Shown here: piece by piece, positions 12,238 to 33,307 of the stretch
Layout: each line of letters starts with the position of its first letter
How positions within the stretch are numbered: position 1 is the stretch's first letter
Source of the DNA: Trichosphaerium sp. ATCC 40318
Taxonomy: Eukaryota; Protista; Tubulinea
DNA: 36,747 bases
Assembly: GCA_038496445.1 (NCBI GenBank)
Contig: JALMLS010000604.1
Coordinates: 1-36,747 of the forward strand
Direction: 5' to 3'
Notes under the pieces: generated by a model
The model's input: the letters and a program-made list of their open reading frames with translations, nothing else
The model's database searches: none
What the model was told of the DNA's origin: nothing
Translations under genes and position numbers: made by a program

Positions 12238-13182
12238 ATGAGTACTAAAGTGGATATATTGCTTCAAGCGCTAGTACAAGAGCTAGAAGAGCAAAAAAGG
12301 GACCTTGAGGATAAATCAACTTACTTGGAAGAAGCCATAGCGCAGTTAGATGACGAGAGACAAAGGATATCGCAGATAGCTAGGTCTTCGGACCTTATAA
12401 AGCTAAATGTAGGCGGAACACTTATGACAACGACTAGACGCACTCTGCGCCAAGTAAAAGGATCTTTACTTGATGTAATGTTTAACGGGCGATGGGAGGA
12501 GCAGCACGTTTTGGATGAAAATGGTCACGTGTTTTTGGATTTTAGCCCAACTTTTTTCGAGATTATTTTGGACTCATTAAGAGAAATGTCTATTTCGAAT
12601 TCAAATGTACCGAAGGCTGTTGTGAAGTTAAGTAGAGAAAACAGGAGATTTGCTGTACTTGCAAATTACCTCGGGTTAGTATCAACTACAGAGACAGTTG
12701 TTGATGACACTTTTGGCAAAACAACATCAATGGATACTAAGAATGGTGTTTTACATCACAAAGGAGTAAGGCTTGGTACAGCAATAGGAGAAATAGGATT
12801 TGATGAAGGAATTGTTGAATGGACTATAGAGATTATGTTCATAGGAGGTATGATGATGCTTGGTGTGTTAGGTGACTGTGATACCCATGGAGCCATTCGC
12901 AACTCTCATGGATTCCAGACAAATTATGCTTGGACATCTAGAAGCCAGTACATTAGAGGTCAGTACGTCAAGATCGATAAATTTGATAACTTCGTTACTG
13001 GTGATACAGTGAGAATTGTTCTTGATTGCTACAAATCAACACTTACTCTACACAACTCACGTCATATTCGCATGGAACCACCTGTCATCAAATTAACTTC
13101 AGGAAAAACTTGGCATCTCCACGCACACTTTGCTACTGGGGCTTCTTCAATAAAATTGGTAAAGACTGAACACTCATATTAA
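12238..13182 (+). CDS. KCTD/T1-type BTB protein with N-terminal coiled coil and C-terminal SPRY/B30.2-like beta-sandwich; intronless
   Basis: 314-aa ORF with IKLNVGGTLMTTTRRTL..GSLLDVMFNGRW..DENGHVFLDFSPTFFEIILDSLR. The C-terminus has GIVEWTIEI..MMLGV..GDTVRIVLDCYKSTLTL. Confidence 0.9.
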   Translation: MSTKVDILLQALVQELEEQKRDLEDKSTYLEEAIAQLDDERQRISQIARSSDLIKLNVGGTLMTTTRRTLRQVKGSLLDVMFNGRWEEQHVLDENGHVFLDFSPTFFEIILDSLREMSISNSNVPKAVVKLSRENRRFAVLANYLGLVSTTETVVDDTFGKTTSMDTKNGVLHHKGVRLGTAIGEIGFDEGIVEWTIEIMFIGGMMMLGVLGDCDTHGAIRNSHGFQTNYAWTSRSQYIRGQYVKIDKFDNFVTGDTVRIVLDCYKSTLTLHNSRHIRMEPPVIKLTSGKTWHLHAHFATGASSIKLVKTEHSY

Positions 13183-15893: not shown

Positions 15894-16514
15894 TCAGTCA
15901 GCTGAAAATTGATCTAGTGGTGCTTGGACTTGTTTGTTATTTTTATAATTACAACGTGTTGCCAATTGACCGTCATCATACCACGAACTATACTCTCCTT
16001 CCAGTTTATCACTTACATAGTTACACTGTAAATTCAACTGTCCACTTTCAAACCAAGACATGTGCTCACCTTCTAGTTTACCATTGACATATTGACTTTT
16101 TTCGTAAAGTTGGCCAGTGTTATACCAACACCTATACTCTCCTTCTATTTTATCATCGACTTGATAACACTGCATAAATAACTTTCCATTATCATGCCAA
16201 CGTTTACATTCTCCATTACGCTTGCCATGAACCCAGGAATACTGACTAACAACAATGACTTTTGAACAAGTTTTTTTTTCTACATAAGAATCTTGCTGTT
16301 CGACTTGTTCAGTTGTTTGGCTATTGTAGTTCTTTATCTGAAGCCATTTTCCATGTCTTTTAAGCTCTACATCATACCTAGTATTCATTGCAGCCCTTTT
16401 TGATAGTAGTGGCCACTTTAGATACATTTCAAAGTCTAAATCAATTATATCAAGTTGTATCTCAACAGGAAGGCGTAATATGTAACTTTCGGTATCTGAT
16501 TGTCGTGATTTCAT
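15894..16514 (-). CDS. F-box-like + MORN-variant repeat protein; intronless
   Basis: 206-aa ORF with ILRLPVEIQLDIIDLD..LLSKR, then four ~24-aa repeats of the form G(E)xxxW(H/Y/F)xxG(K/Q)LxxxxxYVxxKLEG. Confidence 0.9.
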   Translation of the reverse strand: MKSRQSDTESYILRLPVEIQLDIIDLDFEMYLKWPLLSKRAAMNTRYDVELKRHGKWLQIKNYNSQTTEQVEQQDSYVEKKTCSKVIVVSQYSWVHGKRNGECKRWHDNGKLFMQCYQVDDKIEGEYRCWYNTGQLYEKSQYVNGKLEGEHMSWFESGQLNLQCNYVSDKLEGEYSSWYDDGQLATRCNYKNNKQVQAPLDQFSAD

Positions 16515-22670: not shown

Positions 22671-24618
22671 ATGAATCCTATCATTCGCTTCCTTGTTGTT
22701 AGTGTCGGTTTTATGACCGACGCATACGATTTATTCGTTATTGGCATGGTATTAGAAAACAGAAACTTTTCTTTATGTGACATTTCTTAGGTACTCGTTA
22801 TTATTGGACAAGTAAGTCCTGAAGATGATTCTACAGTCGCTAGTAAGTTGTTTGTATTATTTAGATTGTATAAGCGTATTCGCTTATTTTATTGCTATAG
22901 AGACTGCTATTGCTGCTGCTGTATTAGCTGGAGCAATGTCTGGACAGCTTTTCTTTGGTTTCACTGGAGATTTATTTGGAAGAAAAGTTATGTTCTTATG
23001 TACTTTGATAATGATCATCGCTTTCGCTATTTTGAGGTACATACACTCGTATCCAAGTCTTTAAGTATTTTTTTTTCCATTTCCCATTGCATATTTTAGT
23101 ACGTAAACTTCGTAAACAATACAAATACATTGTGCGTAGTCACGTGACCTGAAAAAACGAAAAACAACTTTTTTTAGTTTCTCAGTTTCGCTACGAAAGT
23201 TCGAACTAAAACCTAAAATAAAAGTATTGTAACACGTGTTTTTTCAGTGCCTTTGCCTTTAAAATATCAGGGCATTTCTATTACATACTCGCAACATGGC
23301 GTTTCTTCCTTGGAATGGGTATTGGTGGTGAGTACCCTCTATCAGCGACAATTTCTGCGGAATCTTCTTCAGCAAAGTCGAGGTAGCAAATTTAGAGTTT
23401 GACCATTGTTCTCGCGTTTAATTAAATATTAGGGGTATGGCCATGGCAGGTGTATTCTCCATGCAAGGCGTCGGTAATTTCTTAGCGCCTTTAGTGGTTG
23501 TAATCATTCTCGTCATCAAACCTATTCCTTTATCATATGTATGGCGAATCGCTCTTGGTTTTGGAGCTATTCCTTGTATTCTAACTGCGTACCATCGGTA
23601 CGTTTGTAGCCATAGGCAATGTTATGCATTCACCTAACTCTATGAGATGTTTAGGTTCCAGTTACATGAGTCTTCTCATTTTCAGCACTCGAAAACTGTC
23701 GCTGCATCATCGAAGATAAAAACAAACATTCCAAAACTTCTTTGGCGTTATAAATGGACACTTCTTGGAACAGCTGGAAGCTGGTTCTTATTTGATATTA
23801 CTTTTTACGGAAACGGGTTATTCAAAGCAAGTACCCATAAGACCTGACATGAAATGAAGTTGTTAACAACTTCTTTTTTTAGGAAACTGTTGTGCAATAT
23901 TTATTGGGTGACTCTAAAACTGGACCTCGTGATAAGTCAATTCAAACAGCAGAAGCTTCACTCATTATAGCAGCTATCGCACTTCCAGGTACCTTGTGAA
24001 TACAGAAACCGTTTATGTTAAAAAGCCTACACGTGTCTCCCGTGGTACCAAGTGGAGAATGTTCTAACAAAACGCTAATAGGATACTGGATTGCTATTCC
24101 TGCAGTTGAATATATTGGACGTAAATACCTTCAGTTATTTGGGTTTTTCTTTATGGCTTTAACTTTTCTTATGATGGCTATATTCTATGAAGAAATTAAG
24201 AAACGTCATACATTATTTGTTGTATGTTATGGACTTACATTCTTCTTTTCAAACCTTGGACCAAATACAACAACTTTTATTGTACCGGGAGAAGTTTTTC
24301 CAACAGAAATAAGAACAACTTGTCATGGTATTTCAGCAGCTGCTGGTAAAGCTGGTGCAGTATTGGTACGACTCCCTTATATCTCTTAGAAGTAATTTGT
24401 TGTTTATAACGTCTTAGGGTGTTGCTATTTTTGAGACTTTGTCAAAGAAGTATGGTTATGCTTTCATGTTCTATTTATGTGCAGAAGTTGCTGCAATGGG
24501 TGTTGTTACTACATTGTTTTTAATACCTGAGTATAAACAAAGAGCACTTCGTACTGAGGCTATATCACCATCGGATGATACCACATCTATACAAACTGCA
24601 AAAGCTTTACTAGATTAG
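22671..24618 (+). CDS. PHO84: MFS inorganic phosphate:H+ symporter (PHO84/PHT1 family)
   Basis: GFMTDAYDLF, GQLFFGFTGDLFGRK, WRFFLGMGIGGEYPLSATISAE, VFSMQGVG, LLGTAGSWFLFDITFYG and FFSNLGPNTTTFIVPGEVFPTEIRTTCHGISAAAGKAGA. Confidence 0.95.
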
Positions 24619-25102: not shown

Positions 25103-26929
25103 ATGGAAGAAACGACTCCGATAATCATATCTATGGGCTCTAGTAATATCGTAGCCGGTTTTAGTAGTTCTAGCGCTCCCCATACTATATTTCCAACCGT
25201 GATAGGTACTAATAGCGCCCAACACGCACAAGATAGCGCAAAAAACACAACTGGTACGTTGATTTATGATTCCCATTAAACAAATTCAGATAATCTCGTA
25301 TTTGATTTTTGCACATTGCCTCAACGCAAAGCTCTATATACCTTTTGTTTCATTCCTCGTTACACGCAAAATGCATGATTGCGTGCCATTGTGAGCGGCG
25401 GATAAAGACACAAAAGGGTTACACAGGGCGAGTTGTTTTTTGTCAACGTTCTATGAGATTATAGTTTGTATTATGTATCTATATCCGCTTACAAAGAAGG
25501 AAGGTACTTATATTGGTGAAAATGCTTTATCAAAGAGCGACTTATTGAACTTGTCATACCCAATACAAAACGGACAAGTTACAAACTGGGAAAGTATAGA
25601 GCGTATCTTGGATTACACGCTTAAAACCGAGATGCGTGTAGAAGCTAATGAACACCCTGTTTTAATTATGGATACACCAATGTCGTCAAATACTGATAGG
25701 TATGCCTTTTTTGACTTTGAAGTTTTGTGCATTCCTGAAATTTTCTTTTTCTCATCATATCGTCAATGTGTGATTTTTGTTGGTTTTTTTTTTGACTATC
25801 AGTACTGTTTTGGTTACACCAAATAGAGAATGATATTTCTTGTTTGGGGAAGGTTCTTTTGTTTTTTTTCTTTCATGCGAATCTTGTTGTTTACGTCTGC
25901 TAGAGAAAAGTATATCGAGATGCTGTTTGAAACTTTTGAAGTGCCATACTTTTATATATCTTTGGAAGCTCCTTTTGTAGCGGCTTGTAGTCAAACAAAT
26001 AGAGGTTTGATAGTCTCATCTGGAGGTGGTGTTACGAGCTATGTTCCTCTGTACGATGGAAAGATTGTAACAGACTCAATTGGAAAAGCTGCATTTGGAG
26101 GTAAAGATGTAACAAAGTATTTGACTGGGCTTCTTTGTGAAGCTGGTTATGAGTTCAATACATCAAAAGGTATTGATATTGTACGTGATATAAAAGAAAA
26201 ACATGGATATGTCGCTGCCAAGGGATATGAAAGCGAACTTGAAGTGTTTAAAGATAATAATCAGAAGACATACGAGCTTGACGATGGCAGTTGTGTAACA
26301 GTTAAAGAAGAGCGTATGAAGTGTGCTGAGATTTTAATGGATCCTAGTATAGCTGGTGTTAATGAACAAGGTATTTCTAAGGGAATATACAACACTGTAA
26401 TGAAATGTAAAAAGAAGATGCGAAAGGTACACAAAGAACAATTTCTTCTTCTTTTTTTTTCATGTCAGATTTTGTTTGACGTTTTTCGCTTTTTGAGCTA
26501 GGTCTTCTAGTTTTCTCAACTATGTTTTACAATCAATATCATAGTTGGGTTTTACAGGAAGCTTCATTCTTGGTTTTTCCGCAAATATCAATCGCACATG
26601 CCATTGCAAAACGATTTTAATTGTAAAAAAAGCGATTTCTGCTTTTATTATTCACTAGCTTGTAGGAGCTATTTAGAAATATTGTACTTGCTGGTGGTAA
26701 TACAATGCTACCTGGACTAGCCGATAGGATTACTTTTGATCTAAAAAAACTAGCTCCAAAGGCAAAAATTAATGTTAAAGCAACTCCAGAACGAAAACGT
26801 TCATCATGGATTGGAGCATGTATTGTTACATCTCAAGTTGGTTTTGACTCTAAATGGATCGAGAAAAGTGTCTACGATGAGTATGGTAAAGGAATAGTAC
26901 ACCAAAAGTGCCAAAATTTTATCTTATAA
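25103..26929 (+). CDS. Divergent actin / actin-related protein
   Basis: IIISMGSSNIVAGF..APHTIFPTVI, YPIQNGQVTNWE, EHPVLIMDTP, EMLFETFEVP, GGKDVTKYL, IVRDIKEK, YELDDG, NIVLAGGNTMLPGLADRI, PERKRSSWIGA and YDEYGKGIVHQKC. Confidence 0.93.
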
Positions 26930-28904: not shown

Positions 28905-31900
28905 TTACACCCTTCTTTTCCTTAACCAGCTCCAGTACTTCTTCTGAGTCTCTTGAACCTTAGGAAGACATAGTTGCCTTAATTCAGCCATAGAAAACCT
29001 CATCTTCTTTCGTGGACGAACAGGTTTACTTCTTTCTCTGTTTATCAAATTTTGTTGTAATTGGCTATCTTCTCTTTCATCTTCATCCTTCCCTTCTCTT
29101 TTTCTTTTTCGACTTCTGGATACACTTGCCTTCTGCTGCACAGGTATCTTGTATGTCAATGAATCAGGCGTAGAGATAACAACATGATCTTGAACTATGA
29201 CAGAAGTAGCCGAAGTACCTTTCTTTGTAGTAGTACTTTTCTTTTGTTTTTTCTTTAAAATTGTCATAGAAGATGTACTATCATCTGATGGTTTATCCTT
29301 TCTTTTTCTATTGTTATCACTGCTTCTATCATTAAACAGTTTTTTAGCCACTTTCTTTTTCTTTGTTTTTGCTGTAGCCTTTGTTTTTGTTTTCCTCGTC
29401 TTTTTCTTCGAAGAGGGTGAAGGAGATATATCGTTTAGTCTTCCTTTAGTGATAGTATACGGTTTTTTTTTAGGAACCACTTTCTTGGCTTGCCGTCTGC
29501 TTTTTTCCGCTTCTTTTCCTCCTTCTCTTTCTTCTTCTTCTTCTTCTTCTTGTTCTTTTGATGTTATTTTTGATTCTAAAGATCTTACTTCATCTATAAA
29601 ATCTTCTTTACCATCATCACTTTGTTGAACATCTTTGGTTGGATCAAAACGATCATCTTGTGTAGAACAATCAACATGTTCTGCCATAAACTTACTTATG
29701 ACATCCTCCATTTTAGCAGAATTATTTTGAGTTAATGGTTGGTACTCGCTTCTTTGTTGATTTCCACTTGATGAGGGCGTATTTTCTAAAGATGAGTCTT
29801 GGCTATCTTCTATGATTATTGCCATTTCATCGTTGTCATTTTTGTCTTTTCTTTGTTTTTTTCCTTCTTTGCCAAGAATAATACCATACTGTTCTCGAGC
29901 AAGTATTTTTACAATATTAGATACTTTTTTAGATACACTATCACGTGTAGGTTTATTTTCTGTATCACTACTTTGTTCCTAAAGAAAAAAAAAATTAAAC
30001 AAAAAAAATCGGAAGAAGGGTCAAGTTCTTTTTGTGGAACTGTTGTTTTTGGTACTGTCTCTTTGAGTTATTGGTTTCGTCGAAATTGTAACGTACTTGT
30101 TCATCATTATCACCGCAAAAATAAGCAAAAAGTTTCTCACGTAAGTCATCTTCATCAAACTTGTTTTCGCCGTGAAAGTAAGCTCTTAGTTGTGAGCTTA
30201 AATTATCTTCATCAATATCCTCTAACTCTGGTTCTCTTTCCTCTATAGCAAAACCTTCATCTGAATTACTTAGACTAAAAACATCTACATTATCAGGGTC
30301 AGGGTTGATGTCTTTGCTTGAACCTCTTTTCGTTTTGTCAACTTTCTTGTTTTTTTCTTCTTTTTCTTCATTTTCTTTGTTTGCGATTCCAACATATTCC
30401 TCCTCGCCAAGGAGAGGTGACATGCTCTGTATAGCATGAGGTCCATCATTAAAAACATTATAACTTGGTTGATGAGCCATCATACTCACAGAGGAGTCAT
30501 CAACACTTGGTGCAATAATTTTAGGCACGTCTTCATTTATCTCTACTTCTTGCACTTCATCTGGAGAAGAATTTTTCCCACATGTGGCTGGTTGTGTTGC
30601 TTCGTCTGTTTTGTTCTGTGGTGTCTCTGGAATTACTTGAGGTCCTGTACTTTCGGGCGTTGATTGAGTTTTCTGAGATTGTGGTGTCTCGGGAATGACT
30701 TGATCAGATTCAGATTCGTCTATAGAATTATTATCTTGTTCTTCGCTGTACTGAGTCAACTGAAAACCACCAACTTGAGTAGTTGGTTCATTATCTTCGT
30801 TATCTTCATAATCTACAAGCTTTTCATATTCAACATCGTCGTCATCTACATCATCTACCTCTGATTTCTCCGAGAGTTGACTTTCTTCACCTTGGATTTT
30901 TTTTAGTACGAGCAGAAACATTATGGACTTTACCTGATGCCACGGCATCGTAGTTGGGCGTAGATTTAGCCGCATTGCTCGTTTTTCCTGTTGCGACGGA
31001 TTTATTTGAATCTTGAGAGGCACCACTAGGTGTTCCAGGAGTATTTTGGCTTAGGTCTACAGCAGCATTCAAGTACTTTTCGGGGTTTTCCATATCTTCG
31101 AAGTCCCCATCAAGGTCGAGCTTTTAAAAAAATAAGATTTTAGAGCGCGTAAACGGTTTAAAGTTTACGTACGCTTCCATCGAAAACCCACGTTGGATGG
31201 TTCTTCATGAAGGCTGGCTGTGTACCCTGCAAAAAAGCCTTAAGAATCACGAAACAGATGTGGTTGGTTTTATCAAAACGCTTACTTGAGTATCTGTTGG
31301 CGCATCTGGCTGTGATGCAGGAGGCTTCGGTGCCTTTTCAGGCGTAACAACATCCGCAGGTTTCCAACCTGAGAAAAGTAAATAAGTCAGTCACAACGTT
31401 CGTTGCGTACCATCTAGCTCGTCTAATGCTGTGGTTTGGTCTGGAGGCGGATAGCAATCAGATTGACTTAGAACCTAGCGTCACAAAATTAGTTTTAGCA
31501 CCAAGATGCCTTGAGAACACGTACATAGTTTGGTGGAGCGACAGCATCATTATTTATAGCCTGAGAGAGCATATCGGCGATTAAACCCATACCTTGAGAC
31601 GGCACGTCTTCCTCTAAAACGAATTTAACGTCTCGCGAGCTTTTTATTGGTTTGCTTTCGTGTAGAAGCACTCTAGCTGTACTCTACAAAAAAAAAGTTG
31701 TTCTCACGTACTGTCTCTACAAAAATATTTGAATAAATAAACAACGTATGGCGCGTTTTTATGGCGTACTTGTCTTTTTGAAGTTGGGCGCGAACACGAG
31801 CAAGGCTCTCGAGCATTTTAGGTTTCCCGACCACATCTTGACCCTCACACCCGTGGAATGACAACTTACGTATCTCAACCAAGTAGTTTTTGTAGTCTGG

Positions 31901-32255
31901 TGCGATTTTAACGTCATGGTCTTGAAGGGTTATCAAGGCTCCGTATGTGGTGTTTAATGGTATATTAGGGTGTTCTCTGGGAATTGTTAGAACTGTCAAA
32001 CAGAAATGTCTGTTTACTTACGTTGTAAAGTGCTTCACCGCTTCTGCAGTGAGTATAGCATGTACTTGGTGATACCCATCGGAGATAATAAGCCGAGCAT
32101 AGGGAACTTGTTCATTTGGGTATGATTGGTACTTATATCGTTATAACGGTTGAGGTTAGAGCGTGTACCTTTACTATTTGAGCATTTGGGCTGCACAGTG
32201 GTTTTACACCATCAAGCGTTTGCGCGGCGATCCACGCATGGTTTAAGAATTGCAT
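28905..32255 (-). CDS. ACD: Probable shelterin subunit TPP1/Tpz1/Est3-family OB-fold protein with a long disordered S/TQ-rich tail
   Basis: Exons 32255-32169, 32131-32022 and 31976-~31770 give MQFLNHAWI..AQIVKY..ARLIISDGYHQVHAILTAEAVKHF..GALITLQDHDV..LVEIRKLSFHGCEGQDVVGKPK. A later exon gives DCYPPPDQTTALDELDGW. The frame continues through the 343-aa and 306-aa ORFs. Confidence 0.75.
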
Positions 32256-32467
32256 TTTGGACACTACTAGGCCATGGGAGCGTCAAACGAATTAAACCGC
32301 CAATTTTTCTCATAGCTGTAAAGGCTCAACCTGTAAAAAGAACTTTAAAATCGCGTGTTTGGGCTGGTTAGCTTTTTGTGCCTGAATAAGGATGTACATT
32401 TGATTAATTTTGCCCGACAACTACAGAAACGGCGCTAAATTGCAACACTTGCGTCAAGACAATAGAA

Positions 32468-33307
32468 ATGGCAACGAATAATTCAAAAAAACACGTGGTG
32501 TAAGTGCGAAAGTACAGTATTATTGATTGACGCCTACAAAGGTAGATACGGAAGCGTTGACGCTTCAGTCGCTACCAGCAGATGTAATAAATCTAGTATT
32601 CCACATAATAGATGTAGCAGGCTTTGTACGCTACCGTGAGCTATCTGTGGTATTTAGAACTGGTATTGGCACCTCACCCATTCGTTAACGGTGCGTTTTT
32701 GATTCCCAGAAGACCATGTACACCACAAACAGTCTGAATGTCGAAAAAGGAGTTTACCGTTGTTGGCTCTTATTTGGAAGTTCAAGATCCTGAGAAACCG
32801 ATTGGAGACGCAGATTCTGTAGGCCCAAAGTTGTGCCTTATATCACTCGCAACATAAAGAACTCAAACCATCACCTATGCACAAGGTGCAGCATATCTAT
32901 TCGACGTTCTTATATTTGAGTGTTGTTAACAAGAGTTTGTTATGAAGCTGTAGGATGTGGTATGGAATCTCATTCTGTTTTCTTTCTTTTTTTGGTTTCT
33001 AAGCTTACTTCTAATCAAAAACTAGGTCCTGGAGGCTATCTTGAATGATTGGTATTAAGAGATCAACTACTGGTTAGAGAGTGTGCTTTGAGCGTTATGT
33101 TCAACACATTTGGATGTACGAGATAAGGCAAGACAATACATTAAACGCTGTGTTGCACGTGTTGTAGCACTCCTACATGAAACGAACGATACTGTAGCTA
33201 TTCGCCTAGTACACTGCGTTCCATTGTTAGAAAAACTGATTGCAATATTTGTTTCAGTTGTTTCAACGCCCTCTGTACAACAGAGTGTCCCGACGCACAT
33301 GACTTAA
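32468..33307 (+). pseudogene. Probable F-box + helical-repeat pseudogene
   Basis: LQSLPADVINLVFHIIDVAGFVRYRELSVVFR (F-box) at ~32563-32660. The downstream frame has stops at 32855, 32927, 32951, 33056 and 33089 around an intact GT-AG intron (32960-33025), then LDVRDKARQYI..LLHETNDTVAI. Confidence 0.55.

Follow-up and report, generated by a model that had tools for sequence, protein, structure and literature searches.

A spliced gene for a probable TPP1/TEBP-beta-family OB-fold protein in the amoeba Trichosphaerium sp. ATCC 40318

TPP1-type proteins pair with POT1 at chromosome ends and link the protection of those ends to the recruitment of telomerase; work on them has covered animals, fungi, and ciliates. 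Does the minus strand of a 36,747-nucleotide stretch of DNA from Trichosphaerium sp. ATCC 40318 (hereafter, the window) encode such a protein, and how much of the known architecture does it carry? A preliminary description, made from the DNA letters, had proposed a hidden homologue of TPP1 and Tpz1 at this locus, with an OB fold followed by a POT1-interacting motif. For amoebae and Heterolobosea, our literature search found no report on either TPP1 or POT1, and Myler et al. noted that PF10341, the Pfam TPP1 family, occurs in several unicellular organisms (PMC8653790). The data below indicate that the gene is a recognizable new member of the TPP1 family rather than the founder of a new kind of system. 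The known range of the family takes in both opisthokonts and ciliates, so that a member in an amoeba is to be expected and is no surprise. Such a member identifies a likely POT1 partner and a usable bait for the other components of the end-protection complex in a lineage that has received little study.

Gene structure and transcription

The gene lies on the minus strand and begins with an ATG at 32255, with an in-frame stop immediately 5' of that codon (Table 1). To establish its structure, we compared the contigs of three public runs (X1, X2, and X3) with positions 29400-33000 of the window. X2 and X3 represent one sample, their contigs are 100% identical to the window, and neither is recorded as RNA. 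These contigs are interrupted by precise gaps at 32132-32168 (37 nt), 31977-32021 (45 nt), 31475-31524, 31369-31410, 31227-31285, 31121-31172, and 30891-30933; being spliced and colinear with the window, they derive from transcripts. The gene is real, transcribed, and spliced, with 10 exons taken from the spliced contigs, and an 11th is probably present.

Table 1. Exons of the TPP1-like gene in the window, with their content and the basis for each
Feature	Coordinates	Strand	Content	Basis
Exon 1	32169..32255	-	Residues 1-29; begins MQFLNHAWI, ends AQIVK	X2 contig joins 32169 to 32131
Exon 2	32022..32131	-	Residues 30-66; contains LIISDGYHQVHAILTAEAV	Both flanking joints in X2 contigs
Exon 3	31770..31976	-	Residues 66-135; contains GALITLQD and VEIRKLSFHGCEGQDVVGKPK	Joints in X2/X3 contigs
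Microexon, 5 nt (AGACA)	31712..31716	-		X2 contig has TGTCT (+ strand) between 31613 and 31770
Exons 5-7	31613-31525, 31474-31411, 31368-31286	-	Residues about 137-215; exon 6 (31474-31411) encodes DCYPPPDQTTAL	Contig joints
Exons 8-10	31226-31173, 31120-30934, 30890-30097	-	Acidic, S/T/P/Q-rich linker	Contig joints
Probable last exon	28905..29978	-	357 codons, lysine/arginine-rich, with NLS-like runs	Predicted junction

The reading frame requires the 5-nt microexon, which is flanked by ..GTAG and GTACGT.. and separated from its neighbors by introns of 53 and 98 nt, and which the preliminary description did not mention. The peptides quoted in that description are present on the minus strand, and its exon joins match those of the spliced X2 and X3 contigs, including the joins of exon 6. 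All introns in the contig-supported set are of the GT..AG type and measure 37 to 98 nt. They are very short, and five of these nine introns open with GTACG, not GTAAG.

The 3' end of the gene requires a further step. The contig-supported joints alone yield a protein of 593 aa with a stop at 29995-29997. A consensus donor (GTACGT) at 30096, however, shares its phase with a T-rich acceptor (CTTTAG) at 29979, and from that acceptor the frame runs on without a stop through 357 codons, as far as 28905. No contig spans the resulting 118-nt junction (30096-29979), and one X3 contig covers 29400-29512. Judged from its splice signals and open frame, this intron is likely to be real, in which case it would fuse the basic open reading frame to the rest of the gene and yield a protein of 917 aa.

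Two further sets of contigs bear on relatives of this locus. Contigs from X1, a different organism, are 90-95% identical to 30621-30865, within the acidic exon, where they have 18 extra nucleotides inserted in frame after 30850, and contigs from the same run also match 32545-32961, upstream of the gene; these two matches indicate that a related organism carries the locus. Within X3, one contig is only 90-95% identical to the window over 31302-31463, and its 42-nt skip is displaced by 4 nt. This sequence form points to a putative second expressed allele or paralogue of the TPP1-like gene.

Family identity of the N-terminal domain

Exon 2 alone, a peptide of 36 aa, matched TPP1 (PF10341; E 3.8e-4, 20.7 bits) and TEBP_beta (PF07404; E 1.7e-3), and these two families were its sole matches among 24,736 Pfam models. 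When the query was a peptide of 54 residues spanning the junction of exons 2 and 3, the match to PF10341 reached 32.0 bits (E 1.3e-7), against a curated (gathering) cut-off of 26.5, over profile positions 58-107 of 158 (50/158, or about a third of the profile). TEBP_beta scored 23.8 bits (E 4e-5), below its family cut-off of 26.6, and no Pfam family besides these two matched the 54-residue peptide. A phmmer search of 177,635 PDB sequences with the same peptide returned 11 matches, all of them to human TPP1/ACD or Sterkiella TEBP-beta, with one of the human TPP1/ACD sequences filed as a CST-STN1 chain. The best of these matches (E 0.006) covers 49 residues without gaps, has 18 identities (about 37%), and falls at TPP1 chain positions 53-101; it aligns the central strands and helix of the OB domain of human TPP1 (ACD; PDB 2i46, 7tre chain C). 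TEBP-beta of the ciliate Sterkiella nova (PDB 1otc, 1pa6) is the second-best profile and was matched in the PDB at E 0.2-0.56. Neither exon 1 nor exon 3 alone found anything relevant in Pfam or the PDB, and exon 2 alone matched TPP1 only weakly in the PDB (E 1.4), behind designed armadillo repeats.

These matches make the gene a member of the TPP1 family, and we consider it very likely that its first ~135 residues as a whole fold into an OB domain of the TPP1/TEBP-beta/Est3 family. Est3 and Tetrahymena p50 belong to the same OB superfamily as TPP1 (PMC7338525). On this assignment, exon 1 is predicted to supply an N-terminal helix and the first strand of the OB fold, exon 2 appears to encode the core 'LIISDG...' strand and helix, and exon 3 would contribute the remainder of the fold, including a predicted C-terminal helix. 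The OB fold of the TPP1/TEBP-beta class claimed in the preliminary description is supported by a PF10341 score above the cut-off and by matches to solved structures that include only TPP1 and TEBP-beta. The comparison with RPA70N that it proposed came out in favor of TPP1, with no Rep-A_N match in Pfam and no RPA70 chain among the PDB matches. Its view that the homologue is hidden and hard to detect was an overstatement, in that a standard Pfam scan recovers the TPP1 family once the exons are joined.

Language-model features from the Atlas place exon 2 near RPA70N fragments (0.87), TEBP_beta (0.86), a TEBP_beta/TPP1 cluster (0.80), RMI1_N_C (0.79), and BRCA2 OB1 (0.78), all below the 0.9 that this tool calls reliable. 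All of these neighbors are OB folds, so that the features support a predicted OB class for exon 2 without discriminating within it. The same features of exon 3 led to prenyltransferase, which we dismissed as noise.

Relatives of the gene were sought in much larger collections. An exhaustive phmmer search of 1.84 billion representative proteins with exon 3 found no relatives, in a library that does not hold this genome's own protein. Its four matches were spurious, falling on zinc-finger, LRR, and other repeat arrays in which a short part of the query was matched up to 11 times. Metagenome contigs scanned with exon 3, with confirmation by tblastn, likewise contained no relative.

A surface of the OB fold would be expected to engage telomerase. 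We compared its TEL-patch positions with those of human TPP1, using a numbering that we take to be that of the 90-250 crystal construct. One of the five positions covered by the alignment is conserved, the equivalent of E168, while the human residues E169, E171, R180, and L183 are replaced by H, N, A, and T. Conservation of the TEL-patch residues does not extend beyond mammals (PMC8653790), and the comparison therefore carries little weight.

The region after the OB fold

Short hydrophobic stretches follow the OB fold, the first two at about residues 145-157 and 181-189 and another around 220-232. The segment encoded by exons 5-7 (31286..31613) matched no family; adjoining the OB fold as it does, it is a candidate POT1-binding region by analogy with better-known members of the family. 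In Tpz1, the Pot1-interacting segment is a run of 28 residues that immediately follows the OB fold and makes up three short helices; its human and ciliate counterparts differ markedly from it (PMC9333443). The POT1-interacting segment of animal TPP1 is poorly conserved beyond vertebrates (PMC8653790). Across Tpz1, TPP1, and TEBP-beta, such segments are short and helical, and each is specific to its lineage (PMC9333443, PMC8653790). Since the known segments are lineage-specific, position is the sole argument for a POT1-binding role here. The exon 6 peptide is, by its position, one among several POT1-binding candidates in residues 137-235. The preliminary description had read it as a POT1-interacting motif of the form C-x2-P-x2-Q-x3-L; we found no such defined motif, and only the location after the OB fold fits.

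Beyond the hydrophobic stretches, the protein becomes a long, acidic region that is rich in S, T, P, and Q, low in hydrophobicity, and probably disordered. It contains an excess of S/TQ sites, with 15 observed against 5.3 in shuffles of the same composition (P about 2e-4), and 14 of the 15 fall between residues 142 and 394. The linker also contains a duplicated QVIPETPQ unit and, near its end at residues 530-555, a doubled L-x-AYF-x-G motif. Pieces of the tail matched no Pfam family and contained no further OB domains. If the 118-nt intron is real, the protein may also have a basic, NLS-like C-terminal part; the 357-aa piece that would form it found no homologue and no Pfam family.

This order of parts is familiar. 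TPP1 and Tpz1 have an OB fold, an adjacent partner-binding segment, a linker that varies and is probably disordered, and binding motifs at the end (PMC8653790, PMC9333443), and the amoeba protein, with its OB fold at the N terminus, short hydrophobic segment, and long linker, fits this layout. Human TPP1, like the amoeba protein, continues from its OB fold into a long linker of low hydrophobicity; the human segments that bind POT1 and TIN2, however, have no detectable match in the amoeba protein, whose tail, unlike that of human TPP1, is acidic and rich in S/TQ sites. For fission yeast Tpz1, the layout described in the literature begins with an OB fold, continues at once into a short segment that binds a partner, and ends in further partner-binding motifs (PMC9333443); no Tpz1 chain was among the PDB matches. 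With TEBP-beta, the amoeba protein would share a lysine-rich C-terminal tail if the 917-aa model is right. The tail of TEBP-beta is basic.

Proposed role, alternatives, and neighborhood

The reading that we favor, with a probability of about 0.7, is that this gene encodes an OB protein of the TPP1/TEBP-beta/Est3 family that works at chromosome ends as the partner of a POT1-like single-strand telomere binder. Action at telomeres together with POT1, a function suggested by analogy with the family, is by itself probable, somewhat less so than the membership of the domain in the family. The protein would sit at chromosome ends, with the short segment adjoining the OB fold binding the POT1-like partner. 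The long flexible tail might carry additional partner-binding and regulatory sites, including the doubled aromatic motif, and its S/TQ cluster would suit it as a substrate of ATM/ATR-type kinases. A basic C-terminal end, which is probably present, would serve nuclear targeting. The spliced contigs establish the structure and transcription of the gene, and the Pfam and PDB matches place its OB fold in the family; action at telomeres, binding to POT1, recruitment of telomerase, and control by kinases are predicted by analogy.

A TPP1-family OB protein could alternatively be a subunit of the telomerase holoenzyme, as are Est3 and Tetrahymena p50, and not a telomere-bound POT1 partner or bridge. 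The same PF10341 and PDB family signal would be expected of such a subunit, ciliates have both telomere-bound and telomerase-bound paralogues, and the second transcript form in X3, at 90-95% identity, could be taken for a pair of this kind. That second copy may be merely the other haplotype, however, and the architecture tells against a telomerase subunit: budding yeast Est3, a telomerase component, comprises only an OB fold, with about 180 aa in all, whereas the amoeba protein extends into a very long tail of 450-780 aa, as in TPP1 and Tpz1. We regard a telomerase subunit as unlikely. Equally unlikely, in our view, is that the domain is a generic OB module of the RPA70N or RMI1 type, making protein contacts in DNA replication or repair with no link to telomeres. 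The RPA70 N-terminal domain (PF04057) is also a small N-terminal OB fold for contacts, the 'hydrophobic-SDG' strand and the G-x-P at the end of the barrel have apparent counterparts in RPA70N, and the nearest named Atlas clusters of exon 2 include Rep-A_N, RMI1_N_C, and BRCA2 OB1 at the values given above. This proximity in language-model features is not matched by profiles or structures: Pfam Rep-A_N and RMI1_N_C gave no match even at E up to 10, the PDB matches include neither an RPA70 nor an RMI1 chain, and none of the DNA-binding domains of RPA70 follow the OB fold.

It could also be argued that the resemblance to TPP1 is a chance similarity in a lineage-specific orphan protein, given that relatives went undetected in representative proteins and metagenomes and that the matched stretch is short. 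An E value of 1.3e-7 with a score above the curated cut-off makes this highly improbable, as does the fact that the sole Pfam matches are two related telomere families and that an independent search of the PDB returned the same two.

A bolder version of the favored reading is doubtful. It would take the host to be a deep-branching amoeba and the protein to be a full-architecture TPP1, in which the OB fold faces telomerase, the next segment binds POT1, the S/TQ cluster answers to checkpoint kinases, and the tail is basic. Were it true, the POT1-TPP1 module and its kinase control would date to the last common ancestor of eukaryotes, and the gene would be a first handle on shelterin in the host lineage.

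Elsewhere in the window, the neighboring pieces of open reading frame encode familiar domains of other kinds. A divergent actin/Arp domain at 25440-26501 (+) had no database relatives at E 1e-10, and a sugar-transporter domain lies at 24015-24389 (+). A BTB_2 domain is found at 12238-13182 (+), and MORN repeats are found at 15894-16514 (-).
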